DNA of 63,773 nt, counting the filler, from Octopus bimaculoides (Eukaryota): assembly GCF_001194135.2 (NCBI RefSeq). It is 7 parts of 6 records of this genome, joined end to end, with 100 filler letters (N's around TTAATTAATTAA, not from the genome) between each part and the next. Parts side by side here need not be neighbours in the genome. Positions count along the whole stretch, not along the records: positions 33,554 to 49,868 come from NC_069009.1; 6 more parts are not named here. One strand, written 5' to 3'. Made by a program: the position numbers and the translations under genes. Numbering within the stretch: the stretch's first letter is position 1; each line of letters begins with the position of its first letter. Shown here piece after piece: positions 3,436-49,968 of the stretch. Under the pieces are notes generated by a model. That model did not search any database, was not told the DNA's origin, and saw only the letters and a program-made list of their open reading frames with translations.

Positions 3436-5698
3436 AATGTGTATCTCTGAATGTATTTATCTATTTTTTTTACTATATACTTATCAACATCCTTACGTAT
3501 CTATCCTTCAGTTTATTTTTACACCGATGTATCCATCTATCTCTTCACTCTTTATCTCTCCCCTCTCTTTGTCTATCTTCCTACCTATTTTCCAATATAT
3601 CTGATTGTCTGTGTAACAAGGCTGTAGTCCAACAATGATAAATACTAAGATAAAACCAAATACAGACAATCTTTCCCTCTATATTTATTGCCGAAACTGA
3701 GCCAAATTTCAGCCAACATCTAATCAGAGTTACGAATTAAAAGCTCCCTAGCGAGATTCTAACGAAGCCATTTTAAAGTATGTGCTTTTCAATTGCTTAT
3801 TCTCAATCCGTTATTATTATTTTCTCTCGACGAAATCACATCACATGGAATTTATCGTCCGAGTAACGTTTTTTTTCTTTCCTTCTCTCTTTTCCTATTC
3901 AAGTTCGACCACGTGTTTGCTTCCTGTGCTATGCTATTTATTGACCGGTCTTTCTAACTTATTTACTCTGTTCATATGATGCGTTGTTTTTGTCACTCTA
4001 AATGAACAGCGACTATTACGTCCGTCACTATTCCAACATATTCCCTATTATGATTACTATAAAAGACAAGTTAGCAGAATAGTTAGAGTCGTAAACATGA
4101 TTTAGAACGTTACATGCCAAGTACAAATAACGCAAAGGTCAACTTGGCATTTAATCATTTCGGAGGTTAATAAAATAAAGGGCCAGTAAATAGTTTCGTC
4201 GATGTTGGCAATGAAACAATTATGCGTAGGCGTAGCTGTGCGGTAAGAAATCTGCCTCTCAATTATTAGTTTGCGGGTTGAATCTCATTCTGTGACAGCC
4301 TGGGTAAGTGCCTTCTAATATAGCTCCATGCTATAATAGATAAAAGCCTGTCGAATGGATTTGGTAGCCGAAAACTGATACAAGCCCATCATATATTTCC
4401 CTCAGCGTTCACTATTTTCCCCCTCGTTCAGGTCTAACGAAACTCCATGTTTGTTTTCATTCGGTTTCCCTGAATGTCACCACTGTCCTGTTTCCGTTCT
4501 TAAGTTTGACCCTCCATAAATACAAAATTTTATTTTGGGATTTATGGGAGCAACTGTCTTCGAAGATTCATATTGTCGTTGTTTGCTCAAAATGTGGAGT
4601 AGACAGAGAACCGACAACTGATGAAGGGTCGTTCGTTATATTACTTGTCATTTTTTCTCTCTCTCACGTTATCTGCGTATTTAACTCCTTTGTTTTCGAA
4701 TTTCATGTTGTTTACTGTTGGTGACGTCCTGTACCCATATATGCATGCACGCACACACACACAAACACACATACACACACACAAACACNNNNNNNNNNNN
4801 NNNNNNNNNNNNNNNNNNNNNNNNNNNNNNNNNNNNNNNNNNNNNNNNNNNNNNNNNNNNNNNNNNNNNNNNNNNNNNNNNNNNNNNNNNNNNNNNNNNN
4901 NNNNNNNNNNNNNNNNNNNNNNNNNNNNNNNNNNNNNNNNNNNNNNNNNNNNNNNNNNNNNNNNNNNNNNNNNNNNNNNNNNNNNNNNNNNNNNNNNNNN
5001 NNNNNNNNNNNNNNNNNNNNNNNNNNNNNNNNNNNNNNNNNNNNNNNNNNNNNNNNNNNNNNNNNNNNNNNNNNNNNNNNNNNNNNNNNNNNNNNNNNNN
5101 NNNNNNNNNNNNNNNNNNNNNNNNNNNNNNNNNNNNNNNNNNNNNNNNNNNNNNNNNNNNNNNNNNNNNNNNNNNNNNNNNNNNNNNNNNNNNNNNNNNN
5201 NNNNNNNNNNNNNNNNNNNNNNNNNNNNNNNNNNNNNNNNNNNNNNNNNNNNNNNNNNNNNNNNNNNNNNNNNNNNNNNNNNNNNNNNNNNNNNNNNNNN
5301 NNNNNNNNNNNNNNNNNNNNNNNNNNNNNNNNNNNNNNNNNNNNNNNNNNNNNNNNNNNNNNNNNNNNNNNNNNNNNNNNNNNNNNNNNNNNNNNNNNNN
5401 NNNNNNNNNNNNNNNNNNNNNNNNNNNNNNNNNNNNNNNNNNNNNNNNNNNNNNNNNNNNNNNNNNNNNNNNNNNNNNNNNNNNNNNNNNNNNNNNNNNN
5501 NNNNNNNNNNNNNNNNNNNNNNNNNNNNNNNNNNNNNNNNNNNNNNNNNNNNNNNNNNNNNNNNNNNNNNNNNNNNNNNNNNTTTCCGTACACCTAGGGC
5601 AGAGAAACTCGTTGTATGCATTCCCAATTTACACACTCAAATTCACAGGTAAAACATGTATTTAAGAAAAAAAAAAAATTCATGAATGGATGTTATTT

Positions 5699-5892
5699 TC
5701 ACAGCGATAATGCTCTTCTTAGTACATGAGTCGTTCCAGTTAGCACATTTTTTGCACTTCCTGTAGAGATGGTAAGCCTGGTATCATTTTCAAATAGGTT
5801 TCAGTACCTTTTTTTTTTTTATCATTCCTAGAGATCCTACAATCACTGGTATGATAGTCGCCTTGAGGTGGCACATATTTTCAATTTCTATT
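5699..5892 (-). mobile_element. R4/Dong-type (restriction-like endonuclease) non-LTR retrotransposon 3' end
   Basis: Minus strand IEIENMCHLKATIIPVIVGSLGMIKK / GTETYLKMIPGLPSLQEVQK / LTGTTHVLRRALSL*, the typical C-terminus VIVGALG.IKKG...QK..LLGTAHILR..L. Confidence 0.75.
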
Positions 5893-5894
5893 AG

Positions 5895-6330
5895 CTGCGA
5901 GCTGGTGGAAGCGTTAGCACGCCGGGCGAGATGCGTGGCGGCATTTCTCCCGTTGCTACGTTCCGAGTTTAAGTTCCGCCGAGGTTGACTTTCCTTTTCA
6001 TCATTTCGGAGTCGACAAATTCAGTACCAGTTGAATACTGAGGTTGATGTAGTCGACTGAATTCCTCCCCATCAAATTTCAGCCCCTTTGCCTTTAGCAG
6101 AAACGATTATTGTTATTATTATTAAGACGGCGAGACGGCAGAATCGTTAGATTAATACAATTTCGACCGTCTCTATGCGTTCTGAGTCCAAATTCTGCTG
6201 AAGTCCACTTTGCTTTTCCTCCTTTCGGGGGTCTATGAATTAAGTACCAGTGTATCACTGGGGTCGATGTAATTGATTAGCCCCCCCCCCCACCACCACA
6301 TTTCAGGCCTTCTTCCGCTAGTCGACAGGT
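5895..6330 (+). mobile_element. Two tandem copies of SINE family C
   Basis: GGCGAGCTGGCAGAATCGTTAG head plus central TTGCCTTTCATCCTTTCGGGGTCGAT...AAGTACCAG motif; copies at 5895-6105 and 6125-6330. Confidence 0.8.
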
Positions 6331-6579
6331 TTATAATTATTATGGTCGAATTGTTAGAAAGACAATAAATAACGAATGGTATACATGTAGAAATAAGTGC
6401 ATTAGCATATATATTGGTACGGCAAGTGTACGTATGGCTGTGCATATGTGACGTGCGTATATATACGTACAACCATATATATATCTACGCACACACGCCT
6501 TTACATACATATACATATGTATGTATGTATATATGCATGTCTGTATCCTCTTCTCTCTTTCTCTCTCTCTCTATATATA

Positions 6580-6624
<45 letters not shown>

Positions 6625-7992
6625 NNNNNNNNNNNNNNNNNNNNNNNNNNNNNNNNNNNNNNNNNNNNNNNNNNNNNNNNNNNNNNNNNNNNNNNNNNNN
6701 NNNNNNNNNNNNNNNNNNNNNNNNNNNNNNNNNNNNNNNNNNNNNNNNNNNNNNNNNNNNNNNNNNNNNNNNNNNNNNNNNNNNNNNNNNNNNNNNNNNN
6801 NNNNNNNNNNNNNNNNNNNNNNNNNNNNNNNNNNNNNNNNNNNNNNNNNNNNNNNNNNNNNNNNNNNNNNNNNNNNNNNNNNNNNNNNNNNNNNNNNNNN
6901 NNNNNNNNNNNNNNNNNNNNNNNNNNNNNNNNNNNNNNNNNNNNNNNNNNNNNNNNNNNNNNNNNNNNNNNNNNNNNNNNNNNNNNNNNNNNNNNNNNNN
7001 NATATATATATATATATATATATATACGTAGATGGGGAGAGTGACGTGAGGGAGGCAGACAGAGAGACATAGAGACTGATAGAATAAAACCTAAATAGGT
7101 GGGAAGCTGTAATATAAAGAGAAATCTTTCCGTGCCTCTTATTTTGTATTATAGACTGTACAGCAATTTGTATTGTTAAAACGGAGTTGCTCTAACATTG
7201 TTCAAATGATGAATTCACTTCGTTAGTTTTACAGCCTCTAAGATATAATATATTCCGCTAATTAACGTGAAATTCATTGTATAAAACTATTTTTGGCAAT
7301 GCACATATATCATAACTAAATAAGGAAAGTCGATAAATAATGGAACGGATGAAAATAAAGAAATAACGAATTATGTTACTCGCTAAACAAAAGAAGAAAA
7401 GATTTTGTAAAATATACAGCGGTCTCAACGAATCTTTAATTTTCCTTAGTTTTTTTTTTTTTTACCTCACGGTAACTTTGTTGAAATATATGTGAATGCT
7501 TATACATACTAAACTATAAGTTATAGGTTGCTCATTATAGGTCATTCAAACTATACATATTTCCTGCTTCTAAATGTTCTCTGGACTTCACTAACCAGTT
7601 GATTTTCGTAGTTGCTTTGTGCTTCGCCCAGAATATCTAATTTTTCCCACCAATTGAAAAGTGCAAAGTATTGATATGGAAATTCCACTGATCGCATTTC
7701 CTGACAGGTGGAGGATTGGGCGATGAAAAAATAAGATAATTCTTGCTTGTAGAACCACCGTGTTCATGTATGGGCCTCTTATCTGCCAGATCGACCACCA
7801 GACATTGAAAGCGTAAGAACCAGCCTCTTTAATTTGCGATACATATTTCGATAAACAAATTCCAGGTTCCGTTTCAAGGTGTTTAAGTGGAACTTTTGCG
7901 CAGTTAATGCTTACATCGTTCCTACCTTTTCCCTTGGTGCCCGCTTTTTCTTTTCAACGCATTTACTATGATTATTAACATATTTTTATATG

Positions 7993-33553: not shown

Positions 33554-33591
<38 letters not shown>

Positions 33592-33919
33592 ATCATAATC
33601 TTCGTATTTTTCTACGTAATTCGGCAAAAAAGAAAAAAAAATTTCAGGAAAAGTGAAAAAAAAAAGTAGGGGTTGAGTGGATGGTGTAAGTGAAATTTGG
33701 GAAATTCGATGTTTTGAAAATTTTTTTTGAGAATCGGGGTAGTTTTCAAGAAGTGTGGTACCAGTGCTTGCACTTGCGTACTCGCGCATCCGCAATAGCT
33801 AGTCGTGACTAATCGATCCTACAAAGGCCATCTCGCGCGAACGTGCAAAACATGTATGAGAGTTTTTTTTTTCCTAAACAAAGTAAATGAAACACACCGG
33901 GACCACTCTTCTTGAATAG

Positions 33920-34390
33920 TACCAAGAAATACAACCATATAAATGGAAATAACTTCTACGACACGTCGAACAATTCCCAAGTAAATGATTAATTAGCGTT
34001 TCGAGTAATAGATAGATAGATAGAGTGAGAGACAGACAGACAGACAGACATATAGCTCGCTCCGGCCAGTCATGGTATTAGTTGTCAGTAGCCAAAGAAT
34101 CGACAGGCCAGCAACAGGCAGGCAGACAGACAGACAGTTACTTCACTAGCAGTGAGCACTTTCACTTCTGACAGCTAATAGCATGATAGCGCCGCGTGAT
34201 TAATTACCGATCATTGAGTCGCTGTTTATATTTGAATACGGTAAGTTGACAAAGATTTACTTTAAGGCTGTTATGGTGTTAATATTACTAATAATATTGT
34301 AAATAATAATGTGAACCTCTGGATGTTACAGCAATTATTTCGAAGTGAAAACAGAACATTAGGAAAATATATTTCCTCGTCTTAAATAAT
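33920..34390 (+). promoter_or_regulatory. Putative promoter / non-coding first exon of ZNF paralog 1, with 5' splice donor at 34241
   Basis: GAATACG|GTAAGT donor at 34240/34241. The upstream block AAGAAATACAACCATATAAATGGAAATAACTTCTAC and ~150 bp downstream of the donor are conserved with 43600-43860. A CpG-richer stretch lies at 33775-33850. Promoter status is inferred from conservation and position. Confidence 0.6.
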
Positions 34391-35850
34391 AATGGTTAAT
34401 GTTTAAACTTCTAAAGTCGAAATTTGCCTTGAAAAGGCCTGTAATTTGGTTGGGAGGTGTAATTCNNNNNNNNNNACTTCTAAAGTCGAAATTTGCCTTG
34501 AAAAGGCCTGTAATTTGGTTGGGAGGTGTAATTCTATTGCATGGACTCCTGTTTCTTATTTTATTGAACATGGCCAATGCCTGCCCCACCTTGACTGGCT
34601 TCCGTGCCAGTGACACGTAAAAAGCATCATCCAATTGTAGCCGTTGCCAGCCTCCTCTGGCCCCTGTGCCAGTGGCACATAAAAAGTACCCACTACACTC
34701 ACGGAGTGGTTGACGTTAGGAAGAGCATCCAGATGTAGAAACAGTCAGATCAGACTGGAGCCTGGTGCAGCCTCCTGGCTTCCCAGACCCCGGTTGAACC
34801 GTCCAACCCATGCTAGAATGGAAAGTGGACGTTAAACGATAATGATCATGCAGGGGTGGACTGAAAGTATTTAGGGGGCTCGGGCATAACTGTTTACCGG
34901 GCCTCTTAGCATTGCTATCATAAACGGTGGAGGTAAAGATAACGTACGGCACAAACTTTCAAAATTTAAATCCGCCCCAACCGGCAATCTGACAAGCTAG
35001 AAACAACAGCCAAACCGAGGATTAACATTCTAAATACGAATTACCNNNNNNNNNNNNNNNNNNNNNNNNNNNNNNNNNNNNNNNNNNNNNNNNNNNNNNN
35101 NNNNNNNNNNNNNNNNNNNNNNNNNNNNNNNNNNNNNNNNNNNNNNNNNNNNNNNNNNNNNNNNNNNNNNNNNNNNNNNNNNNNNNNNNNNNNNNNNNNN
35201 NNNNNNNNNNNNNNNNNNNNNNNNNNNNNNNNNNNNNNNNNNNNNNNNNNNNNNNNNNNNNNNNNNNNNNNNNNNNNNNNNNNNNNNNNNNNNNNNNNNN
35301 NNNNNNNNNNNNNNNNNNNNNNNNNNNNNNNNNNNNNNNNNNNNNNNNNNNNNNNNNNNNNNNNNNNNNNNNNNNNNNNNNNNNNNNNNNNNNNNNNNNN
35401 NNNNNNNNNNNNNNNNNNNNNNNNNNNNNNNNNNNNNNNNNNNNNNNNNNNNNNNNNNNNNNNNNNNNNNNNNNNNNNNNNNNNNNNNNNNNNNNNNNNN
35501 NNNNNNNNNNNNGAAGACCATATATTTATAAGAAGCATTCAGCAATACATCAAACTCTTTCTATAAATTAGATCTTCAACAAATGATGGGGAAACAGTTC
35601 TTCTGCACATTGTATTTCACAGCAACATTTTTTTTGTCTTCACAGTTTGTAATGTAGAGGAGATTATCAATTAACAGATTAATTAACATTGGATAACTTT
35701 ACAAAGGATTTAACAGTTTACATCTTCTGTTTTGGATATTAATTAAGATCACAAATGAAAGAAACATAACAAATTATTCTCTGAAAATAGTGACACAACT
35801 AAATACAAACATCCATAGAATTTGAAAAAAACACTATCATTTTGGTATTT

Positions 35851-37527
35851 ATGAGAAATTATTCTCTCATAATGAATAATTTCACTGAACCAAAAAGCCC
35901 TGATACAGGAGAGAAGCCATATCATTGTGATATCTGTGGTAAGTCATTCAATAAAGAAAGAGTCTTAACTAAACACAAATACATTCATACAAGAGAAAAG
36001 CCATATCACTGTGATATCTGTGGTAAATCATTCTCTCAAAGAAGTAACTTGAATAAACACAGACGCATTCATACTGGAGTAAAACCATATCAGTGTGATA
36101 TCTGTGGTGAATCATTCTCTCAAAATGATAATTTGACAAAACACAAATACATTCATACTGGGGTAAAACCATATCAGTGTGATATCTGTGGTGAATCATT
36201 CTCTCAAAATAATAATTTGACAAGACACAAATACATTCATACTGGGGAAAAACCATATAAGTGTGATATATGTGGCAAATCATTTTCTCAAAGTGGCACT
36301 TTAACTCGTCACAAACGTATTCATACTGGGGAAAAACCATATCAATGTGATATCTGCGGTAAATCAAGTGCTCGTAGTGGTGACTTGCCTAAACACAAAC
36401 GTACACATACAGGTGAGAAGCCATTTTATTGTGATATCTGTGGTAAATCATATGCTCGAAATAGTGACTTGACTAAACACATACGTGTACATACAGGAGA
36501 GAAGCCATATCACTGTAATATCTGTGGTAAATCATTTGCTAGCAATAGTCGCTTGACTAGTCACAAACGCATTCATACTGGGGAAAAACGATATCAATGT
36601 GATATCTGCAGTAAATTATTTTCCACAAGTGGCGCTTTAGTTCATCACAAACGTACTCATACTGGTGAAAAACCATATCAATGTGATATCTGTGGTATAT
36701 CATTTGCCCAAAGTGGTTACTTGCCTAAACACAAACGTACTCATACAGGAGAGAAGCCATTTTATTGTGATATCTGTGGTAAATCATTTTCTGGAAGTGG
36801 TGATGTGACAAAACACAGACGTATACATACAGGAGAGAAGCCATATCATTGTAATATCTGTGGTAAATCATTTGCAGACTGTAGCAGTTTAAGTTGTCAC
36901 AAACGTATTCATACAGGAGAGAAGCCATATCATTGTGATATCTGTGGTAAATCATTCACTAGAAATTTTTATTTGATTAGTCACAAGTGTATTCATTATA
37001 AGGAAAACCCATATCAGTGTGATATCTGCAGTAAATCATTTTCTACAAATGGCAGTTTAGTTCGTCACAAACGTGTTCATACAGGAGAGAAGCCATATCA
37101 GTGTGATATCTGTGGTAAATCATTCTCTAGAAGTTGTACCTTGCATGAACACGAGCGTACACATACAGGAGAGAAGCCATATCATTGTGATATCTGCGGT
37201 AAATCATACACTGGAAATAGTCAGTTGACTAGACACAAAGATATTCATACAGGAGAGAATCGAAATCATTGTGATATCTGCGGTAAAACATACTCTACAA
37301 ATAGCTATTTGATTAGTCACAAGCGTATTCATACTGAGGAAAACCCATATCAGTGTGATATCTGTGGTAAATCATTTTCTCACAACAGTACTTTAAACGA
37401 TCACACACGTATTCATACAGGAGAGAACCCATATCATTGTGATATCTGCGGTAAATCATACTCTAGAAATAGTCAATTGACTAGTCACAAATGTATTCAT
37501 ACAGGAGAGAAGCCATATCTGTGGTAA
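35851..37527 (+). CDS. Tandem C2H2 zinc-finger protein (19 fingers, no KRAB/ZAD/BTB domain seen); cluster paralog 1
   Basis: Open frame with 19 consecutive 28-aa units YxCxxCGKxFx5LxxHxxxH joined by TGEKP-type linkers. First ATG 35851, second in-frame ATG 35872 (A at -3); the ORF track starts at TTG 35842. Ends at TAA 37525-37527. Confidence 0.95.
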
Positions 37528-38222
37528 ATCATTCTCCCAAACTGGGGTCTTGTCTAATCACAAACGTACCCATACAGGGGACTTGCCACATGATTGTAAT
37601 ATCTTGTATAGGAGTGTGTATCTTTAAAGACAACCATTTCTGTATATGATATGACAAAATGCAGTCACTCACTCTCTCTCTCTCTCTCTCAGACACACAC
37701 ATGTCCATTTCAAATACACGTACATACTTGTTTCACTTTCTGCTCTCTTCAAAGCTTGAAGAAATAAAGGAATTTTAACGAAATTAACGAATATATTCGA
37801 AAACTGAGTTGCTGATTTTGACATGTGAGGTATCAAAACATTCCGTAATCTTTTGCCTAACAAATAAACTTTATTTTCATTACAAATATTTATCATTCTA
37901 TAATTCAGTTAATTTTTCTGTGTGAAAACTGTCCTGTCTTCCATTTTTTTCATACGTCACTCATTTCGCCCCATGTTATTTACACTGTTGAGGATGTCCT
38001 GTACTCATATATATGTATATAGATATATATATATATAGAGAGAGAGATAAATATAGATATATACATATATATATGGGTTATAACAACCGTCTAAGGGATA
38101 CCTGTATCCAATGAATCTGCTGGAGTATTATCTACATGTGATCACGTGCATTAGTATAGATAATGACAAGTATAAACGGAAGTTTATCAATATTTTATTT
38201 CGATTCTCTGTTTTGTTTATAT

Positions 38223-38397
38223 ATAGGCGCAGGAGTGGCTGTGTGGTAAGCAGCTTGCTTACCAACCACATGGTTCCGGGTTCAGTCCCACTGCGTGGCA
38301 TGTTGGGCAAGTGTCTTCTACTATAGCCTCGGGCTGACCAAAGCCTTGTGAGTGGATTTGGTAGACAGAAAACGAAAAAGCCCGTCGTATATATGTG

Positions 38398-38434
<37 letters not shown>

Positions 38435-38630
38435 CTGTGTTTGTCCCCCCACCATCGCTTGACAACCGATGCTGGTGTGTTTACGTCCCCGTAACCTAGC
38501 GGTTCGGCAAAAAGAGACCGAAAGAATAAGTACTTGGCTTACAAAGAATAAGTCCTGGGGTCGATTTTCTCGACTAAAGGCGGTGCTCCAGCATGGCCGC
38601 AGTCAAATGACTGAAACAAGTAAAAGAGTA
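38223..38630 (+). mobile_element. SINE family B, long form (head, CORE-like CCTTGGGCAAGT region, microsatellite, 3' tail)
   Basis: AGGCGCAGGAGTGGCTGTGTGGTAAG...GGTTCAGTCC...TTGGGCAAGTGTCTTCTACTATAGCC...; tail GGCGGTGCTCCAGCATGGCCGCAGTCAAATGACTGAAACAAGTAAAAGA. Reverse copy at 45023-45421. Confidence 0.9.
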
Positions 38631-38932
38631 TATATATGTGTGTGTGTTTGTGTATAGACACATATACACACGCACTATGTGTAGATAGGTCGATGTACAT
38701 ATATACATGCATACAGACCCAAAAGAACATATACGAATGTATAAACACATATATATGCATAGAGTACATCTATTACTGTCCCAGTAGCTAGAACGTTGTT
38801 CTCTCCTCCGTAATATTGAGGAGAATTTGAAAATAGGCTGTGTCCGAAGTTTGAAAGTGTTAAGTTACAAAAAATTAATTTCTCGATCTGCCGTTCAAAG
38901 GGAAAAAAAGATCCGAGCCTACAGCTCCCAAT

Positions 38933-39319
38933 GTGGAGGCGCAATGGCCCAGTGGTTAGGGCAGAGTACTCGCGGTCATATGATCGTGGTTTCGATTCCC
39001 AGACCGGGCGTTGTGAGTGTTTATTGAGCGAAAACTCCTACAGCACCACGAGGCTCCGACAGGGGATGGTGGTGAACCCTGCTGTACTCTTTCACCACAA
39101 CTTTCTCTCGCCCTTTCTTCCTGTTTCTGTTGTACCTGTAATTCAAAGGGTCGGCCTTGTCACACTCTGTGTTACGCTGAATATCCCCGAGAACTACGTT
39201 AAGGGTACACGTGTCTGTGGAGTGCTCAGCCACTTGCACATTAATTTCACGAGCAGGCTGTTCCGTTGATCGGATCAACTGGAACCCTCGACATCGTAAG
39301 CGACGGAGTGCCAACAACA
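38933..39319 (+). mobile_element. tRNA-derived SINE family A, full length
   Basis: Colinear with 20047-20425; (AAC)n tail. Confidence 0.9.
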
Positions 39320-39699
39320 GCTTCCTATAAAAATTCAGCTTAGCTGGCGAAATTTTGAAAACTCTTCGAAATGTTGCTTCGTATTTTTTTTTTCTACCTG
39401 GAAATGATGAAAGTCGAACTGGGTGGAATTTGAACTTTGAGACTAAAGATGTGTAGGGCACAGCCCATGGATACATAGACGAAATGAAGAGAAGGGAATT
39501 CTTGTCGGGCGACATGAAGTCTTAAATCAAACATTTTTTAAAAAGAGGTGAAGCGACAAAGTGTGTAGTAAACTTGTGTAGGTATACCAATCTTTCAATA
39601 CCTCAATGAACTCCGACCCCTGAAAACATTGACATTAAATGGCTAACAGTATTGATGTTAAATTTATAATGTCGAATTACGATGTTGTTTAACCATCGT

Positions 39700-39731
39700 C
39701 TTTATCTTACTGCCTTTTTTCCTATTTCAGA
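39700..39731 (+). promoter_or_regulatory. 3' splice acceptor of the ZNF paralog 2 coding exon (AG at 39729-39730)
   Basis: Pyrimidine tract CTTTATCTTACTGCCTTTTTTCCTATTTCAG, conserved at 45580-45610 (AG 45609-45610). Confidence 0.7.
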
Positions 39732-40111
39732 ATATCACATGTTGACGTGAAAGGAATTTCTCCATTCAGAATGTGCCTTTGATATTTTTATCAATTTTCA
39801 TCACCTAAAGGAAGACGATATATTTATAAGGAGCATTCATCAATAAATCAACTTTTTTATATAAATATAATCTATGACAAACTATAACAAAATATTTTTC
39901 TTGTCTCGACTGTCTGGAATGGAGAGGAGGTGATTGGTTTACAAGCTTGGATAACTTCACAAACGTGTTGACAGTTTTCACCTGCTGATTTAGGTATTCA
40001 GTAAGCTCACAAATCAAGAAACATAGCATCAAATTTTTCAATGAAAATAGGGACTCAACTGAACACGAACATATTCGTAGAAGTGAAAAAATCAATATTA
40101 TTGTGATATAT

Positions 40112-41683
40112 ATGACAAATTATTCTCTCATAATGAATAATTTAACTGAACCTAAAAAGCCTGATACAGGAGAGAAGCCATATCGTTGTGATATTTGTGA
40201 TAAATCATTCTCTCAAAGTAGTAACTTGACTGAACACAAACGTGTACATACAGGTGAGAAGCCATATCATTGCAAAATCTGTGATAAATCATTCTCTCAA
40301 AGTAGTGGCTTGACTAGACACAAACTTATGCATACAGGAGAGAAGCCATATCATTGTGATATCTGTGGTAAATCATTCTCTCGAAGTAGTGGTTTAACTA
40401 GACACAAACTTATGCATACAGGAGAGAAGCCATATCATTGCGATATCTGTGATAAATCATTCTCTCAAAGTAGTGGCTTAACTAGACACAAACTTATGCA
40501 TACAGGAGAGAAGCCATATCATTGTGATATCTGTGGTAAATCATTCTCTGAAAGTAGTGGCTTAACTAGACACAAACTTATACATACAGGAGAGAAGCCA
40601 TATTATTGTGATATCTGTGGTAAATCATTCTCTCGAAGAAGTAACTTGACTAGTCACATATGTACACATACAGGAGAGAAGCCACATCATTGTGATGTCT
40701 GTGGTAAATCGTTTTCTGATAATAGCGCATTAACTCGACACAAACGTGTACATACAGGAGAGAAGCCATATCATTGTGATGTCTGTGGTAAATCGTTTTC
40801 TGGAAGTGGCCGTTTAACTATTCACAAATGTATACATACAGGAGAGAAGCCATATCATTGTGATATCTGTGGTAAATCATTCACTGAAAGTGAGAACTTG
40901 AATAATCACAAGCGCATTCATACAGGAGAGAAACCATATTGTAATATCTGTGGCACATCATTTTCTTGTAATAGTGATTTGATTAATCATAAACGCATTC
41001 ATACTGGGGAAAAACCATATCACTGTGATATCTGTGGTAAAACATTCTCTCGAAGAAGTCACTTGACTATCCACAGATATATTCATACAGGAGAGAAACC
41101 ATATCATTGTGATATCTGTGGTAATTCATTCTCTCGAAAATATTACTTCTCTATTCACAAACGAACACATACAGGAGAGAAGCCATATCATTGTAATATC
41201 TGTGGTGAATCATTTTCTAACAATAGCACATTAACTCGACACAAACGTGTACATACTGGAGAGATGCCATATCATTGTGATGTCTGTGGTAAATCGTTTT
41301 CTGAAAATAGCACTTTAAAACGTCACAGACGTATACATACAGGAGAGAAGCCATGTCATTGTGATATCTGTGGTAAATCATTCATTGAAAGTGGTAACTT
41401 GAATAAACACAAGCGCATTCATACAGGAGAGAAACCATATCATTGTGATATCTGTGGCAAATCATATTCTCGTAATAGTCATTTGACTACTCATCAACGT
41501 CTTCATATTGGGGAAAAACCATATCACTGTGATATCTGTGGTAAATCACTTTCTGCAAGTAGCAGTTTAACTATTCACAAACGTATTCATACAGGAGAGA
41601 AGCCATATCAATGTAATATCTGTGGTAAATCATTCACTGTAAACAGTCACTTGGCTAAACACAAGCGTGTTCATACAGGATAG
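40112..41683 (+). CDS. Tandem C2H2 zinc-finger protein (18 fingers, no effector domain seen); cluster paralog 2
   Basis: Open frame with 18 C2H2 units and TGEKP linkers. ATG at 40112 and 40133; TAG 41681-41683. Leader [23 protein letters not shown] is homologous to the paralog 1 leader [23 protein letters not shown]. Confidence 0.95.
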   Translation: MTNYSLIMNNLTEPKKPDTGEKPYRCDICDKSFSQSSNLTEHKRVHTGEKPYHCKICDKSFSQSSGLTRHKLMHTGEKPYHCDICGKSFSRSSGLTRHKLMHTGEKPYHCDICDKSFSQSSGLTRHKLMHTGEKPYHCDICGKSFSESSGLTRHKLIHTGEKPYYCDICGKSFSRRSNLTSHICTHTGEKPHHCDVCGKSFSDNSALTRHKRVHTGEKPYHCDVCGKSFSGSGRLTIHKCIHTGEKPYHCDICGKSFTESENLNNHKRIHTGEKPYCNICGTSFSCNSDLINHKRIHTGEKPYHCDICGKTFSRRSHLTIHRYIHTGEKPYHCDICGNSFSRKYYFSIHKRTHTGEKPYHCNICGESFSNNSTLTRHKRVHTGEMPYHCDVCGKSFSENSTLKRHRRIHTGEKPCHCDICGKSFIESGNLNKHKRIHTGEKPYHCDICGKSYSRNSHLTTHQRLHIGEKPYHCDICGKSLSASSSLTIHKRIHTGEKPYQCNICGKSFTVNSHLAKHKRVHTG

Positions 41684-42070
41684 AAGCCATATCATTGTGG
41701 TATCCGTCGTAAATCATTCTCATATAATAGTGACTTGACTAATCACAAGCATATTCATACTAGGGATAAAACAATATCACTGTGATATCTATGGTAAATC
41801 ATTCTCTCAAAACCGCATTTCAGTACAGTTGTGAGTATTCACACAAAAGTGCAACCATTCAGTATTAAAATTTATTACAACAATTATGACTATTTTTTTC
41901 TGCTGAAAAACAGGGCTTTTTTTATCTCTTCAAATTTGATGTTATCAACTTCACTTTCTATAACGTCTGCATCAAATTCATGAAAGTCATGTATATATGG
42001 AAGTTTATCAACAATAACTTCGATTTCTGAAGATGATTGTGCTGGATTTTTGAGCAATTTGTTATAAGAG

Positions 42071-42097
42071 AATAAAGAAATAGGAATAATGAATAAA
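42071..42097 (+). terminator. Candidate polyadenylation signals for ZNF paralog 2
   Basis: AATAAA at 42071-42076 and 42092-42097, about 400 bp after the stop. Weak evidence in AT-rich DNA. Confidence 0.3.
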
Positions 42098-42336
42098 AGG
42101 TTGCACTGAAGTTGGTTTTGTCTCCGTGTTTTCATCATTGTTGTTGTTATCATCATCATCCTTTAGTGAACATTTTTTTATATGCTGGCATGGGTGGGAC
42201 AGTGTGACATGAGCTGGCAAGCCATAATACTGCACTAGGTCTGATTTGTTTGTGTTTCTTTGGGTGTATTCTCCTAATGCTAACCAATTCATAGTTTATG
42301 CTGTGTGCTTCAAATACGTGTGTGTGTGTGTATGCA

Positions 42337-42367
<31 letters not shown>

Positions 42368-42391
42368 TCTTTTACTCTTTTACTTGTTTCA

Positions 42392-42730
42392 GTCATAGGA
42401 TCGCGGTTTCGATTTAGAGACCGGGCGTTGTGAGTGTTTATTGAGCGAAATCACCTAAAGCTCCACGAGGCTCCGGCAGGGGATGCTGGCGAACCCTGCT
42501 GTACTCTTCCACCACAACTTTCTCTCACTTCCTGTTTCTGTTGTGCCTGTAATTCAAAGGGCCAGCCTTGAAACAATCTGTGTCACGCTGAATACCCCCG
42601 AGAACCACGTTAAGGGTACACGTGTCTGTGGAGTGCTCAGCCACTTACACGTTAATTTCACGAGCAGGCTGTTCCGTTGAACGGATCAACTGGAACCCTC
42701 GACGGAGTGCCAACAACAACAACAACAACA
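42392..42730 (+). mobile_element. tRNA-derived SINE family A, 5'-truncated
   Basis: Starts at GTCATAGGATCGCGG; long (AAC)n tail. Confidence 0.9.
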
Positions 42731-42780
42731 AACAATCAAAAGAGCAATATTCCAGTAAAAATAGAGACATCTCAGCATGG

Positions 42781-43110
42781 TGTCACAGTAGCCAGAGGTG
42801 GAAGGGGGGATCCATATGTACAGGTCGAAGACGAGGTGTGAATGGAGACCCTGAATGCTTGTGTAGGGCACTGCCCATAAATTGATAACAGACGGATTAT
42901 AGACAGGACCCTTAGAGCAGGCTGCTCAATGAGCTGGTCTGCAGAGAGCTGGACTTCCGATTAGGAACAAGAGTGGGTCTGAGAATTTAGGTGGCTGATC
43001 GCGTTCAGCTCCACAGTGTTTAGTTGATTGAAGAGGAATAAACAACACGCCGACACACTTTTGTTTCTGGTTATTTTTATGTATAGCTTATGGAACCTAT
43101 ACTCGGTGCA
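42781..43110 (+). mobile_element. Possible LTR-like fragment
   Basis: GC-richer island beginning TGTCAC, with AATAAAC followed by a GT-rich tract; no second LTR, PBS or gag identified. Confidence 0.25.
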
Positions 43111-43597
43111 CAACGCAGTTGGAAATAGAGTGAGCGCGATCAGTACTCCGAATAACGTATAGGTGGATGGAATGCTACGATGATTAGCTCTTCCGATCAC
43201 GAAGGGTAGGGAGAGGCCGGCTCCATGACCCTACGAAAATCTCAAGGGTAACGCCATCCTCAACTGAATGGATGATTACAAAATGGAATAGAGGTGCAGT
43301 GATCTTTAGATGAGGAGGAGGGGGTTGTGGTGGAAGAATACTGATCGGTAAGGAGAGGGAAGGGCTGTAAGTGGGGCAGACGTCATAGGTTAAAGACAGC
43401 CCCTTTCTTTCGGGGTCTGCGACGGGATCAAGATATGTGCTGGAAACGGTCATAGAGTAGACTATACAAGTACATTTTGTTAAAATAATCTGGCGAGAAT
43501 TTTAAAAAAATCTTGAAGAGGGAAGTTATTGACAGAATGAGGGGATAAAAAACACTGGAATAAATCCAACAAGTCAGTAGCGCTCTCTATTGGAGAA

Positions 43598-43860
43598 TTA
43601 AAGAAATACAGTCATATCAAGGGAAACAACTTCTACCTCGGGCCAAAATAGCTAATTACGATTATTAATTAACGGAGTCGGTGCTAGTATCTGAATACGG
43701 TAAGTTGACAAAGATTTACTTTAAGGCTGTAATGGTGTTGATAATACTACTAATAATAATGTAAATAACAGAATTATGTGAACCTCTCGATGTTACAGTA
43801 ATTATTTCGAAACGAAAACAGAACATTAGGAAAATTTATATCCTCGTCTTAAATAATAAC
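43598..43860 (+). promoter_or_regulatory. Paralogous promoter / first-exon module of ZNF paralog 3, donor at 43700
   Basis: GAATACG|GTAAGTTGACAAAGATTTACTTTAAGGCTG matches 34234-34270; AAGAAATACAGTCATATCAAGGGAAACAACTTCTAC matches ~33925-33960. A second partial donor copy is at 44049. Confidence 0.6.
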
Positions 43861-45022
43861 TTCCACACTGAAATATTGATCTGTTGTTTATGAAAATCTA
43901 TGATCGACTGTTACACTTAATATAAAGGAAATTAATTGGTAAAATGAGAGTAATGTGGCATAATTAATCAGTAAAATGAGAGGAGAACGGTTGAAGAATA
44001 GCACGTTAATTAATGTTGTCCTGTTGTTAATGAGGCATTGATAAAACGGTAAGTTGACGAAGATTTACTTTAGAGTTATATTAAAAATAGTAATGATGGT
44101 TTCAAATGTTGGCCAAGATCCAGCAATTTTTTAGGATCCGATTACATGGGACCCAGCATTTCCCTAAAGGGATAAATGGCTAAGTCAACCTCGGCTGTAT
44201 TTGAACCAGGACTTACTGTCGAGATCGAGTCCGCCTTTCATTCTTTTCAGGGTAAGCGAAAGATAATAATAATAATACTAATCTTCAGTACTTTAGGCAT
44301 AAATCCTGGAATTTGGCGGAAGGGCGTACGTCGATTCCATGGACCCCAGTACTGTTCTTAGTTTATCGATCTCGAAAGGATGAAAGGCAAAGTCGACCTC
44401 AGCGGACACAAGACGGGCGAAATGCTATTAAGCATTTTGTCCTGTATGCTAATGATTCTGCCAGTAAGTGACTGAATTAAGTTAATCCTTCGAAGTAATT
44501 TCGATTTTTTAGCGTTCAAAGAATGAACTTTAATCAGTTATATATTTTCCATGTTCTGGTATATGTGCCCCACTGAATTTGTTATTGGAATGTGTTAAGA
44601 AAATTTTCTCTGACTAAATTACTAATGATGTAGATTATGATACTTTTCAGATGGGGGTAGTTTACAATTATATCGGAATTTGATATGGGAAACCAAATTG
44701 GTGGGCTAGCACGCATACACACACTATTACACATCACATACGTCTACAAAAATAAATGTGAATTGTAATGTGTGTCAGCATATATATGCAGAAGGACACC
44801 AATTATTTTTTCCATATGAAATTCTGATGTGATCATAATTTTTGTCATCTGAAGTGTATTTGTAGAAAATTTTTCTGAATGTTATGAGGAAAAGAGGCTG
44901 ACTTGAGTGAGTTTGTTGAAACTCTTCTCTCCACTTTCAGACAAAAAAAAATCATCATCAGTTCTGATATAATCAGAATCCATAGCATTGGAAGCGTACT
45001 TGTACTAGATTTCATTAAAATA

Positions 45023-45421
45023 TTTTACTCTTTTACTTGTCTCAGTCATTTGACTGTGGCCATGCTATAGCACCGCCTGTGGTCGAGCAAGTCGACCCCA
45101 GGACTTATTCTTTGTAAGCCTAGTACTTATTCTGTCGGTGTCTTTTTGCCGAACCGCTAAGTTACGTGGACGTAAACACACCAGCATCGGTTGTCAAGCA
45201 ATGTTGTGGGGGGAGGGGACAAACACAGACACACAAACACATATACATATATACGATGGGCTTCTTTCAGTTTCTGTCTACCAAATCCACGCACAAGGCT
45301 TTGGTCGGCCCGAGGCTATAGTAGAAAGACACTTGCCCCAAGGTGCCACGCAGTGGGGCTGAACCCGCAACCATGTGGTTGGTAAGCAAGCTACTTACCA
45401 CACAGCCACTCCTGTGCCTAT
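45023..45421 (-). mobile_element. SINE family B, long form
   Basis: Reverse complement of the 38223-38630 element. Confidence 0.9.
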
Positions 45422-45424
45422 ATT

Positions 45425-45971
45425 CGTTTTTCAAAAAGATATGAAGGAGGAAATAGGAGTACATGCACACTTGTGTAACTTTGCCAGTCTTTCAATGCTT
45501 GAATGATCTCCAACCCAAATGAATGACAGTGTTGACGTAAAATTTGCAATGTTGACTTATTGTATCATTTAACTATCCTCTTTATCTTACTGCTTCTTTT
45601 CCTATTTCAGAATATTACATTATGTTGACGTAGAAGAAATTTCTTCATTCAAATGTGCCTCTGATATTTTTATCAACTATTATTCACTAAAGGAAAATGA
45701 TATATTTATATTACAAGGATTCATCAATACATCAGACTCATTATATAAATAAATCTATGAAAAACTGTTTCTTTTGGACAATGGAATTAGCAGCAACATC
45801 TTATTGTCTTCGCTGCCTGGAATGTAGACGAGATGATCACTTCACAGGTTAATTAAGCTTGGATAACTTTACGAAGCATTTGACAGTTTTCACCTGCTGA
45901 TTTAGATATCAAGTAAGATCACAGATGAAAGAAACATGGCATTAAATTATTCTCTGGAAATAGTGACGCAA
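45425..45971 (+). pseudogene. Intron end, splice acceptor and 5' leader of paralog 3 (no fingers follow on +)
   Basis: Colinear homology with 39530-40060 (CTTTATCTTACTGC...CCTATTTCAG|AATAT; GGATAACTT; TTGACAGTTTTCACCTGCTGATTTAG) and with 35513-35795. Homology stops at AAATTATTCTCTGGAAATAGTGACGCAA (45971). Confidence 0.85.
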
Positions 45972-46875
45972 GTGCTAGTGTCATGTACAATGCATAGGTG
46001 CCGGTGCCATATAAAAAGCATTGGTGCTGGTGTCACACAAAGAACACAAGTGCCAGTCTTGTGTACAACGCATAGGTGCTTTTGCCCACATATAAAGCAC
46101 TGGTGCTGGTGTCAGATACATGGCACTGGTGCCCTTGCCACATGATATGCACTAGTGATGGTGCTGATGCCAGGAAAAAACGTGCTAGTGCTGATGCCAT
46201 GTAAAGAGCCTCGGCGCTGGGGCCACATGAAAAACATTGCTGCTGGTGTCACTTAAAAAGCACTGGTGATGGTACCATACAAGAAAACCTTGAGGATAGT
46301 GTTACATAAAAAGAGCAGGTTCTGCTGTCACATATAATTCATTGGTGTTGGTCCTTCATAAAAAACCATGCGCAATGATACCATGTAACAAGCACTGCTG
46401 CTGTGGCACATAAAAAGCACTGGAGATGGTACCACACAAGTGAAGCCCTGGTGATGGTGTCACATAAAAAGAGCAGGTACTGGTGTCACATGAAATTCAT
46501 TGGTGTTGCTCACTTATAAAAAACTTAAGCAATGATGCCATGTAAAAAGCACTGGTGATGCTTCCAAGTGAAAAATCACTATGGATGGTGCTATGTCAAA
46601 ACATTGGTGATGGTGCCATGTAAGATGAACTGCTGAGGCTGTCACACAATAAGAACTGGTAATGCTGTCCTGTAAAAAGCATTAGTGCTGGCACAACGTA
46701 AATAACACTTCACTCTTGGAGTGGTTAGTGTTAGGAAGGGCATCCAGCTGTAGAAACTCTGCCAGATCAGATTGGAGCCTGGTGTAGCCATCTGGTTTAC
46801 CAGTCCTCAGTCAAATCGTCCAACCCATGCTAGCATGGAAAGCGGACGTTAAATGATAATGATGATGATGATGAT
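45972..46875 (+). mobile_element. Retroposon family D: degenerate ~25-30-bp repeat array plus conserved 3' tail ending (GAT)n
   Basis: Repeated GCACTGGTG(A/C)TGGTG(C/T)CAYRTAAAAA-like units at 45972-46710, then CACTCT..GAGTGGTT...AGGAAGGGCATCCAGCTGTAGAAAC...GACGTTAAA(TGA)n. Tail copies also at 34605-34848 and 46898-47057. Confidence 0.8.
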
Positions 46876-47299
46876 ATATATATATATATATAAACTACAC
46901 TCTCAGAGTGGTTGGCATTAGGAAGGGCATCCAGCTGTAGAAACTCTGTCAAATCAGATTGGAGCTTGGTGTAGCCATCTGATTTCCCCAGTCCTCAGTC
47001 AAATCGTCCAGCCTATGCCAGCATGGAAACGGACGTTAAACGATGATGATGATGATGTAAATTAGTTGGCATTAAGAAGTGCTCCCTGCAGTAGATAACA
47101 TGCGAAAACAGACAATGGAACCTCATGCAGCTCCTGTCAAACCATCCAGCACATGTCTACCTGGAAAACAGATATTAAACGATGATACACAACAGTAACT
47201 AACATACTTTGAATCTGATCCTCTACTGATGTATTGAGAACAAATACGCCAAATTTCGTAGTGTCTGTAATTTTACATCCAATATATTAAACATGTGTC

Positions 47300-47830
47300 G
47301 TTGTCGTTGGCTTTATCTTGTGTTCAAGAATTTAATTCCTCTTTTGCTGATTGCTTCCTTTATGGTGACGGTATTGACCGCATGGTAATGTTGGTGGAGG
47401 ACAAGGTCGATTTTGTCGAACATTTCTCTCATTTCACTTGTTCCTTTTCTCTTCTGGTGGCTTTCATGATTTTTCACTCCAAAGGTGACGGAACCTAACC
47501 AGTTGGTCTCAAGCTTGTATTCCAAACAATTTAAGCTCAAGCAGTGGCTTTCAGTGCATCTTCAAAGAGGCCAATCATGTGGTATTTTCTCCGAAGTGAG
47601 CTCGCTGAATAAGACTTGGCTTGGAAACCTTGACTCTTCTATTCCTGCTACATGTGTTCCCATCAAAGTCGGTGTTTCACGATGAGTGACTCCATACTTT
47701 GACCTTTGGCCTTTTCCAGGACTTTGTTGTTGGTCCTGTACTGTTGCCATTTGATGTTCAAGATTGAACGACTCTTCTACATACCTGATCCAACATTAGC
47801 ATCTGAAAGATTCTGAGCAATGATACCATG
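47300..47830 (-). mobile_element. RTE-clade LINE ORF2 C-terminal remnant
   Basis: Minus strand RSILNIKWQQYRTNNKVLEKAKGQSMESLIVKHRL*W / HVAGIEESRFPSQVLFSELTSEK, the classic RTE pattern RRILNIKWQD.VTN.EVL..A...SIE......LRW.GHV.RM...R.PKQ.L..EL. Confidence 0.85.
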
Positions 47831-48352
47831 TAACCATACTCTATGGTATGGAGAAATATATGTATGTTTAATTGGAAGTTGTGATAATTCTATCATACAA
47901 AGCTTTTAATCATGTATCTTTTATTCGTTTCATTAGACTGTGGCCATACTGGGGCAATGCCTTCAAGATGTTTAGTCAAATATATCAATACCAGTGCTTA
48001 TTTTTCTTGAAGCCTAGTATGTATTTTATAGGTGTCTTGCCAAGCCGTTCAATTACAGTGACATGATCACTACAAGGGTTGTCAAGTGGTAGCTAGGGGA
48101 CAAACACACACTGGTAAATGGATATCTTCTTTCAATTTCCATCTACCAACTTTTTATATCTTGGTCTTGGATATATAATTTAACGAGGCTTGAGGAAATA
48201 ATTATTTACATAACGCAATACGATTACTATTGCATGAGACTCGTCAATCAACGACTCTCAGTGAACTACTTACTAATTGCTTGTAGTTCGTTATAGCAAT
48301 GGGTCAGTCCACTTTTAGTTCCTTGTTGAGTGGTCAGAATCGTTCCACAAAA

Positions 48353-48563
48353 GGAAGCGAGCTGGCAGAAACGTTAGCATGCCAGACGAAATGCTTAGCG
48401 GTATTTCGTCTGCCGCTACGTCGACTTTGCCTTTCATCCTTTCGGGGTCGATTAAATAAGTACCAGTTACGCACTGGGGTCGATATAATCGATTTAATAC
48501 CTTTGTCTGTCCTTATTTGTCCCCTCTGTGTTTAGCCCCTTGTGGGCAATAAAGAAATAAGAA
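48353..48563 (+). mobile_element. SINE family C
   Basis: GCGAGCTGGCAGAAACGTTAGC...CTTTGCCTTTCATCCTTTCGGGGTCGATTAAATAAGTACCAG...CAATAAAGAAATAAGAA. Confidence 0.85.
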
Positions 48564-48654
48564 TCCTTCCACAACACAATTCCACTGACAAGACTTTGGT
48601 CAAACTGAGGCTGTTGTAGAAGGCACTTGCTCAAGGTGAACCTGGAACCATGTG

Positions 48655-49054
48655 GTCAAGCAACTGTTATGAAATAACGACTCATGACAGTTGTCAGAAT
48701 ATGACTTTTTATCTGCGTGAATACGTTTGTGCCTTTTCAAGTGACTGACTTCCAAAAATGATTTACCACAGGTATTACAATATGGTTTTACCTTAGTATG
48801 AATACGTTTGTGATTAGTCAACTGACTATTTTGAGAGAATGATTTACCACAGATAATACAATGATAGGGCTTCTCTCATGTATGAATACGTTTGAGACTA
48901 ACTAAAGTGCTATTTTCAGAAAATGATTTACCACACATATCACAGTGATGTGGTTTTCCTCCAGTATGAATATATTTGTGACTAGTCAAGAGATTATTAC
49001 AAGAGAATGATTTAACGTAGCTATCACAATGATAGATTATTTCAGCAACCATAT
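48655..49054 (-). pseudogene. C2H2 zinc-finger pseudogene segment (about 4-5 degenerate fingers); inverted coding part of paralog 3
   Basis: Minus strand reads [105 protein letters not shown]. In-frame TGA at 48876-48878, lost Cys/His residues, and a SINE at its 3' end. Confidence 0.9.
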
Positions 49055-49280
49055 GAGTATTCAAACACAACACACAAGTGTAATGATTTCAATATCAAAA
49101 TTTATTTCATGAAAACAATTGTGACTGTTTTGTCTGCTAAAGGACAGAGTTTTTTTTCTTCTTCAAATTTGATGTTATCAACATCAGTTTCACCAATATA
49201 TATGTGTGTGTCACTGTTTGTGAATTACTTCACCATGGTTAACAGCAAATACAACCTGTGACAACCTTCTGTAACAAAAG

Positions 49281-49465
49281 ACCGGCTATGCATCACAGCC
49301 ACAACTTCTTATACGACAGTACCTCAACCGGCTCTGCATCGCAGCCACAACTTCTTATACGACAGTACCTCAACCTGCTCTGCAGCGCAGCCACAACTTC
49401 TTATACGACAGTACCTCAACCGGCTCTGCATTGCAGCCACAACTTCTTGATACAGCATCTCAACT
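49281..49465. repeat. 46-bp minisatellite, about 4 copies
   Basis: Unit ACCGGCTCTGCATCGCAGCCACAACTTCTTATACGACAGTACCTCA starting at 49281, 49327, 49373 and 49419. Confidence 0.95.
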
Positions 49466-49800
49466 ATCGTGTACATCGACTACGAACTGGTATTTATCAT
49501 CCTTGTGTCTGAACATTCTTCTAACATCATATTATGGACTCTTTCAATGCTCTGTACTTAACGCACACGCATACATCCATGTTTGTACACACATACACAT
49601 TATGTATACATGACGCACACACAGACACACATGTTAACCTATCAATAAAGTCTTGTCTTAAACATTCTACCCGATTGTGTCTCTCTTTTCCTTCTGGCAC
49701 TTATACTCATTTATCCGTTTTCATATTTTATTTGTATCGACCATCCAATGTACTAAAGGAGCCATTCTGGTTACCTCTCCTTCGCACGGTCGTTTTACAC

Positions 49801-49848
<48 letters not shown>

Positions 49849-49968
49849 TTTATATATATATATATATANNNNNNNNNNNNNNNNNNNNNNNNNNNNNNNN
49901 NNNNNNNNNNNNTTAATTAATTAANNNNNNNNNNNNNNNNNNNNNNNNNNNNNNNNNNNNNNNNNNNN

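Follow-up and report, generated by a model that had tools for sequence, protein, structure and literature searches.

An intact C2H2 zinc-finger exon lacking a promoter module in a tandem Octopus bimaculoides cluster, and a plausible but unproven shared first exon

Here we describe a tandem cluster of C2H2 zinc-finger (ZNF) genes in Octopus bimaculoides in which one member, paralog 2, carries an intact finger array behind a conserved splice acceptor and is without a promoter, an exon 1 and most of an intron, with the 3' flank of paralog 1 and insertions of short interspersed nuclear elements (SINEs) and other transposable elements (TEs) in their place. The locus was analyzed as part of a 63,773-nucleotide stretch of joined genome segments, filler included (the window, whose coordinates are used throughout). 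The piece of interest, positions 33554–49868, corresponds to CM046629.1 of assembly GCA_001194135.2 at ~473.9–490.2 kb, to which it is identical over 16,315 bases, and real assembly gaps bound it on either side, the upstream one of 1093 N and the downstream one of at least 1815 N. It belongs to a same-strand C2H2 cluster on CM046629.1, in which 2.5 kb separate the piece from the end of an annotated upstream gene of 978 amino acids, P0. The layout was read from self-comparison, motif searches and direct reading of the plus strand, on which all features lie unless stated otherwise, and an 84-nt period was detected in the finger arrays. Window coordinates are those of the fetched locus (L001) plus 30111, and CM046629.1 coordinates are those of the window plus 440333.

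Across two Octopus species, the canonical unit of this ZNF subfamily opens with a promoter and a short non-coding exon 1 ending at an invariant ACG/GTAAGT donor (slashes mark splice junctions), and continues with an intron of ~1.9 kb, a strongly conserved acceptor, a non-coding leader of ~380 nt, a whole finger array held in a single exon, and a conserved 3' flank. ACG/GTAAGT donors are found in the piece at 34240/34241 (cassette A) and 43699/43700 (cassette B), and the two cassettes (34198–34392 and 43664–43859) align at ~85–88% identity, which bears out the claim of a first-pass annotation of this DNA that an exon-1/donor cassette precedes paralogs 1 and 3. The donor cassette is recognizable by the motif ACGGTAAGTTGAYAAAGATTTACTTTAAG and the acceptor/leader module by TCTTTATCTTACTGC...TTTCAGAATA, the leader of the O. 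vulgaris units U1 and U2 (see below) being of a separate kind. Units A and B of O. bimaculoides, as well as units X and Y of O. vulgaris, each have their own cassette. Exon 1 and leader contain stop codons in all three frames and are thus non-coding. Because neither cassette nor leader was found at two further ZNF loci on other chromosomes, one in O. bimaculoides (L003) and one in O. vulgaris (L004), these modules are regarded as specific to the subfamily.

Conservation along the unit peaks exactly at the donor, where TATCTGAATMCG/GTAAGTTGAYAAAGATTTACTTTAAGRCTGT is nearly invariant among four copies from the two species. The second peak lies at the acceptor, with 72–90% identity over positions −40 to −1 and 76–87% over the first 100 exon bases, compared with 33–64% for the intron further upstream. 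The ~30 nt of intron just 3' of the donor (GTAAGTTGAYAAAGATTTACTTTAAGRCTGT) are nearly invariant at 34241–34272 and 43700–43731, as well as at 11238 and 15661 of the related O. vulgaris locus (L002), a degree of conservation that, as we read it, is far beyond the needs of a 5' splice site.

Compared with this canonical unit, paralog 2 has the acceptor, leader, array, and 3' flank, with no cassette of its own 1.2–1.9 kb upstream of the acceptor. What is left of its intron is a 3' end of ~200 nt (39534–39730) with a CTTAC branch-point-like motif, a polypyrimidine tract, and a CAG acceptor. The acceptor reads ...TTTTCCTATTTCAG/AATAT at 39730/39731 (...CTTACTGCCTTTTTTCCTATTTCAG/ up to the junction), with a copy at 45611/45612 in paralog 3. 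Over positions −40 to −1 it is 77–90% identical to the acceptors of complete units (90% to that of paralog 3), and the first 100 exon bases are 80–84% identical, against 33–64% for the intron further upstream. The non-coding leader (39731–40111) has stops in all frames, five upstream ATGs, and a conserved miniature upstream open reading frame (uORF) at +9. The open reading frame (ORF) then runs from the first in-frame ATG at 40112 to the stop at 41681–41683, encodes 523 amino acids, and is annotated as a gene in GCA_001194135.2. The intact 18-finger ORF reported at first pass was recovered in full: all 18 fingers are of the canonical CX2CX12HX3H form, joined by TGEKPY-type linkers, and all 72 zinc ligands are intact. 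Past a premature TAG, two decayed fingers are followed by the canonical 3' flank (41684–42165), with ATTAAA at 41864 and AATAAA at 42071 and 42092.

The substitution pattern points in the same direction. Between paralogs 1 and 2, the ratio of non-synonymous to synonymous substitution rates (dN/dS) is 0.35 at a dS of 0.57. The ratio falls to 0.28 for structural positions and rises to 0.70 for those that contact DNA (−1, 2, 3, and 6), a pattern typical of functional ZNF arrays. Paralog 2 therefore does not resemble an unprocessed pseudogene, its ORF being intact and the dN/dS of 0.35, an average over both lineages, being low. Taken together, the acceptor and the ORF suggest that both are still in use.

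Two further observations concern the paralog 2 exon itself. Fingers 2–5 of its array (40270–40600) are nearly identical to each other (…SSGLTRHKLMH…), which indicates a recent duplication or conversion within the array. The three-codon uORF of its leader, ATG TTG ACN followed by a stop, is kept in paralog 2 (39739–39750), paralog 3 (45623–45634), and O. vulgaris unit Y (L002 ~17584), always 9–12 nt into exon 2, and a longer version occurs in O. vulgaris unit X; this conserved uORF may regulate translation of the leader. The paralog 2 protein had no entry in a collection of 15 billion proteins. Exact look-ups aimed at RNA-seq (Logan) contigs returned no match for the paralog 2 ORF with a GTG start, a minus-strand leader ORF of 96 amino acids (two versions), or a minus-strand spacer ORF of 164 amino acids. 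Homologue searches with the paralog 2 protein, with a profile of the leader, and with the protein of O. vulgaris unit X were dominated by vertebrate ZNFs or yielded two candidates, and in an exhaustive HMMER search with the leader profile the adding up of finger hits obscured the result.

The spacer between paralogs 1 and 2 (37528–39730) was searched on both strands for a copy of cassette A or B, and none was found: Smith–Waterman scores of 12–15.5 stayed within the shuffled-sequence null (maximum 17–20.5), compared with 137.5 for a positive control of cassette against cassette, and word-7 blastn of the cassettes against the same interval gave no match. The absence of a cassette between the end of paralog 1 and the acceptor, as first claimed, thus stands, while the accompanying description of the interval as mostly SINEs holds for about half of it, ~55% being repeat-derived and only ~43% SINE or other TE sequence. 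The main elements are SINE-A (38221–38637; 87% identical to an inverted copy at 45026–45423, with a donor-like GTG/GTAAGC at 38246 in its head), a full-length SINE-B (38933–39316) flanked by a 12-nt target-site duplication (38921–38932 and 39317–39328, identical at 10 of 12 positions), and a SINE-C-like fragment (39384–39446) with a counterpart in the intron of O. vulgaris unit X (L002 12556–12624). Simple repeats lie between SINE-A and SINE-B, along with a TE fragment at 38839–38916. Donor-like sites occur at 37825, 38246, 38475, and 39548, the ratio of observed to expected CpG (CpG o/e) is ~0.9–1.05 over 38354–39550, well above that of arrays and leaders, and the spacer contains no run of N. 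A 22-nt motif found ~135 nt after SINE-B in both spacers (39450 and 42860) was considered as a landmark of a deletion and rejected, its match being marginal (E 0.024) and in conflict with the order of other markers.

On the far side of this spacer, paralog 1 is preceded by a 5' module. CpG o/e reaches its maximum within the piece (1.5–1.6, with 15–18 CpG per 300 nt) in the block at 33554–34000, which precedes donor A by 250–700 nt and is probably an island of unmethylated promoter DNA, the rest of the cluster being poor in CpG. The promoter-proximal region and non-coding exon 1 of unit A (33884–34240) are homologous to 43561–43699 and to L002 15546–15660, and from the donor onwards the conserved 5' end of intron A extends over 34241–34392, nearly invariant for its first ~30 nt. 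Intron A contains two assembly gaps. The first, 10 N at 34466–34475, has exact 59-bp duplicates on both sides (34407–34465 and 34476–34534) and is therefore an unmerged contig overlap with no sequence missing; ~69 bases within 34407–34534 are accordingly an assembly artefact. The second, 467 N at 35046–35512, conceals the 3' end of intron A, the acceptor of paralog 1, and ~80 nt at the start of its exon. The right edge of this gap, 35513, aligns to 39811, i.e., position +81 of the paralog 2 exon, which places the paralog 1 acceptor nominally at ~35433, in agreement with the position near 35430 inside the gap that had been expected for it. At 1.2 kb, the resulting intron falls short of the 1.85–1.9 kb of other units, and the gap may therefore be under-sized. 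The flanks of the 467-N gap follow the order and orientation of the canonical unit on both sides, continuity across it not being provable; no reading frame spans either gap, and everything that crosses them is non-coding.

The visible part of the paralog 1 leader (35513–35850) leads into an ORF (35851–37527) in which 19 of 19 fingers are canonical and intact; paralog 1 is absent from the genes that the GenBank annotation lists for the fetched locus. The ORF ends in PYLW and a stop codon after an 11-nt deletion, and is followed by a decayed finger tail and the 3' flank (37528–38220), with AATAAA at 37763 and 37863 and weak homology to the canonical 3' flank at 38113–38210. The same YLW-stop ending is common to paralog 1 (37500–37530) and O. 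vulgaris unit X (L002 14195–14211), the 11 nt having been deleted between ATAT repeats, as ccATAT[cattgtgATAT]ctgtgg. Because the two deletions lie in different fingers, they probably reflect recurrent slippage and not shared ancestry.

The related locus of O. vulgaris, L002 (OX597842.1), is free of gaps and was reached via a protein with a similar leader. Its units X and Y share the architecture seen in O. bimaculoides, with donors at L002 11238 and 15661, exon starts at 13084 and 17573, and leaders, arrays, and 3' flanks in the same order. Leader identities between units of the two species all fall within 71–79% and the best matches form a mosaic, without a clear one-to-one orthology. An attempt to reconstruct the 484-amino-acid O. 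vulgaris gene model spanning X and Y from two exons gave no solution. Several O. vulgaris units are broken, namely Y and two others here labeled "frag" and "remnant".

In the same locus, region 4492–7971 holds two directly successive array exons, U1 (ORF L002 5001–6470, 17 fingers) and U2 (ORF 7048–7971, 10 fingers), each with its own TTTCAG acceptor and a leader of ~450 nt. They are exon-only duplicates with 76% identity, a homology that starts ~65 nt upstream of the acceptors, both ORFs intact, and a dN/dS of 0.37. The U2 acceptor lies ~225 nt past the U1 stop, an interval that contains one ATTAAA and no GTRAG. Since a promoter, an exon, and an intron cannot fit into ~225 nt, U2 is a second array exon without a promoter of its own, and it has remained intact over a divergence similar to that of paralogs 1 and 2. 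U2 is the strongest indirect support for the general idea put forward at first pass, in which one promoter would choose between whole DNA-binding arrays used as alternative last exons.

Further downstream in O. bimaculoides, paralog 3 illustrates the opposite state, being dead despite its own promoter module, as judged from an interrupted leader and a destroyed finger array, the loss of which the first-pass annotation had missed. Its promoter/exon-1/donor cassette B spans 43421–43859 (donor 43699/43700), and a mini-copy C lies 350 nt downstream (43962–44099), with a 30-nt copy of the donor region, AAACG/GTAAGTTGACGAAG, and a donor at 44048/44049. This mini-copy is 84% conserved in O. vulgaris, where its equivalent lies at L002 16450–16585 (donor 16535), and it may be an alternative first exon 1b. 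The intron 3' end, acceptor (45611/45612), and leader of paralog 3 occupy 45427–45974, the leader being cut at 45974 by an insertion. The sequence that follows consists of a 26/78-nt satellite, two tandem SINE tails (46702–47057, period 187), and TE-rich sequence. Sequence comparison identified a remnant of the array, ~4 zinc fingers, on the minus strand at 48655–49059, and self-comparison placed the canonical 3' flank of the unit in forward orientation at 49070–49191; inverted fingers ahead of a forward flank point to a local inversion or rearrangement. Downstream of this flank lies a 46-nt tandem repeat (49281–49453; 3.7 copies, 93% identity). Scans of the piece with Rfam models and for tRNAs yielded microsatellite artefacts only: the matches to mir-297, mir-466, and mir-1277 at 42309–42375 were sub-threshold, fell in a palindromic (TG)n/(CA)n microsatellite, and were rejected as low-complexity artefacts.

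From its sequence, we conclude that paralog 2 is an "exon-only" member of a fast-turnover tandem C2H2 zinc-finger cluster. Its promoter, exon 1, and most of its intron would either have been deleted or never have been copied in a partial duplication, and tandem copies of the same exon-only kind occur in O. vulgaris. As both its acceptor and its 18-finger ORF have been maintained, we infer that the paralog 2 exon is probably still expressed. On the same strand upstream of its acceptor, exon 1 at 34240 provides the sole family-type donor, with the whole paralog 1 exon in between, and the structural premise of the shared exon 1 suggested at first pass is thereby upheld. The donor of this exon, the nearest of the family type, would then splice over the paralog 1 exon to the paralog 2 acceptor at 39731, and paralogs 1 and 2 would form a single transcription unit in which one non-coding first exon leads to either of two terminal exons. 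The layout is indeed that of a shared donor with alternative terminal exons, within a piece where the gaps at 35046–35512 and upstream of 33554 could conceal further modules. AATAAA or ATTAAA hexamers lie 3' of both arrays, such hexamers alone being no proof of use, and the acceptor of paralog 2 is visible while that of paralog 1 falls in the gap. Because exon 1 and leader are non-coding, the two "isoforms" would have no protein sequence in common, and the locus would in effect hold two genes driven by one promoter. We envisage this arrangement as a by-product of cluster turnover that selection may have tolerated or exploited, and not as machinery dedicated to selecting arrays. The reading we tentatively favor is such a by-product, with exon 1 at 34240 spliced past the paralog 1 exon, and we regard it as possible but short of probable.

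Several observations weigh against this reading. The acceptor of paralog 1 is transcribed first and is presumably equally strong, and given the two AATAAA hexamers that follow paralog 1, skipping to paralog 2 may be rare. Because the cluster is full of decaying units (paralog 3 here; Y, "frag", and "remnant" in O. vulgaris), turnover would also be expected to leave orphan acceptors behind. The dN/dS estimate averages both lineages since their split and is no proof of present-day constraint on paralog 2, nor does it date the loss of exon 1. In O. vulgaris, no donor for the U1/U2 pair was found in the 4.5 kb available upstream. As for a designed mechanism, no docking/selector RNA complementarity was found between the post-donor intron and the regions upstream of the acceptors, duplex energies being close to those of shuffled sequences (z −1.8 to +0.5), and there is, at this level, no sign of a dedicated mechanism of array choice. 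Finally, the donor-like sites and CpG-rich TE sequence of the spacer could give paralog 2 another first exon.

This last point opens the main alternative, in which paralog 2 gained its own start in the spacer, within or beside a SINE or other TE or within 39320–39730, and is expressed either from a new first exon spliced to the old acceptor or as transcripts that run unspliced through that acceptor. TE-derived promoters are common, the four donor-like sites listed above (including that in the SINE-A head) would be available for splicing, CpG o/e is elevated over much of the spacer, and GenBank annotates paralog 2 as a stand-alone gene. However, the high CpG is largely accounted for by young SINEs, whose promoters are transcribed by RNA polymerase III and not by RNA polymerase II, and no homology to the promoter module was found in the spacer. 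An unspliced start would moreover leave the strong conservation of the acceptor unexplained, and the U1/U2 pair of O. vulgaris offers only ~225 nt, without GTRAG, for such an origin; overall, we consider an own start somewhat unlikely. Paralog 2 could instead have been orphaned recently and be silent, or transcribed by read-through at noise level, with no disabling mutation so far. Such a fate would fit the constant decay of the cluster, seen in the broken O. vulgaris units Y, "frag", and "remnant" and in the destroyed array of paralog 3, as well as the premature TAG and two decayed fingers already present in paralog 2, and dN/dS gives no date for the loss of exon 1. Yet we estimate that an ORF of 1,572 nt would be expected to break after ~1% neutral divergence, whereas the spacer SINEs are ~13% diverged from their sister copies, the order of their insertion relative to the loss of exon 1 being undated. 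Conservation of the acceptor and of the initial 100 nt of the leader also equals that in complete units, all zinc ligands remain in place, and the U2 exon of O. vulgaris has persisted under constraint in the same situation. A silent relic thus appears quite unlikely.

An assembly artefact, i.e., a paralog 2 cassette lost by repeat collapse in a short-read contig or residing in unplaced sequence, would be in keeping with a gap-rich scaffold that has one demonstrable join artefact (the 59-bp duplicate at the 10-N gap) and with a repeat-rich spacer. Against it, 37528–39730 is free of N runs, the full-length SINE-B with its matching 12-nt target-site duplication runs contrary to a chimeric collapse at that point, SINE-A and SINE-B come from different families, and the same kind of promoter-less exon is found in the gap-free O. 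vulgaris assembly, all of which makes this explanation very improbable. We know of no spliced leader in molluscs that could supply a 5' end. Splicing from the shared exon 1 is retained as the favored reading for paralog 2. The broader proposition, that in octopus C2H2 clusters one promoter and short non-coding first exon regularly serves at least two terminal exons, each with a complete and different array, seems unlikely on present evidence. Splicing and polyadenylation, and not separate promoters, would then pick the array, a logic like that of Drosophila lola but with no protein part in common, which would recur in at least two Octopus species, with paralogs 1 and 2 here and U1 and U2 in O. 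vulgaris.

Literature searches found no description of a shared first exon with alternative arrays for cephalopod ZNFs, consistent with the initial impression that none had been described. The closest known logic is that of Drosophila lola, where splicing can join a single 5' region to any of many 3' exons, which mostly encode different zinc fingers (PMC1947980). As in lola, and also in mod(mdg4) and fruitless, one promoter region at the octopus locus would yield factors with different DNA-binding parts. However, the shared exons of lola encode a BTB domain and thus a common N-terminus, whereas the octopus exon 1 and leader are non-coding and not one residue would be common to the products. 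Trans-splicing is a further feature of lola, which has ~20 proven isoforms, compared with two candidate exons here, known from sequence alone. The octopus locus accordingly falls outside the lola/mod(mdg4) family proper, with its common N-terminal BTB: stops occur in all frames ahead of the first in-frame ATG at 40112. It likewise does not show the hallmarks of a Dscam-type docking/selector choice, its duplex energies being no better than those of shuffles.

The nearest genomic parallel is offered by vertebrate KRAB-ZNF read-through ("conjoined") transcripts, such as human ZNF559-ZNF177, in which upstream 5' exons are joined onto a downstream zinc-finger exon in tandem same-strand genes. The downstream member of such a pair normally also possesses a promoter, and the exons shared usually include those coding for KRAB, whereas octopus paralog 2 is without a promoter module. 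Clustered protocadherins and UGT1A are likewise tandem arrays of large self-contained variable exons, but form the mirror image, with many promoters and variable first exons leading to shared last exons. Cephalopod protocadherins, for their part, arise by whole-gene duplication and not by a variable-first-exon scheme (Albertin et al. 2022, PMC9068888). Exon-only tandem duplicates and unprocessed pseudogenes resemble paralog 2 in that promoter and first exon are lost or left uncopied in unequal crossing-over, with TEs in the spacer. Unlike unprocessed pseudogenes, paralog 2 has an intact ORF and acceptor and signs of purifying selection. At the cholinergic locus (VAChT/ChAT), a common promoter and non-coding first exon precede the coding sequences of two different proteins. 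The VAChT and ChAT products are unrelated and one gene is nested, whereas the octopus exons are paralogous tandem terminal exons.

Coleoid genomes encode well over a thousand C2H2 genes, with roughly 1,800 in O. bimaculoides and 2,785 in the squid D. pealeii (PMC9068888). At the locus described here, the anatomy is real and the shared-exon mechanism is plausible and unproven. Should paralog 2 be silent or started from a TE, the locus would show no more than the ordinary birth and death of genes in a tandem family. If the shared exon is used, gene counts based on ORFs would exceed the number of independent transcription units, and adjacent factors that differ in DNA specificity would be either co-regulated or mutually exclusive. 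Duplication of the exon alone would then bring new DNA-binding specificities into an existing expression domain at little cost.

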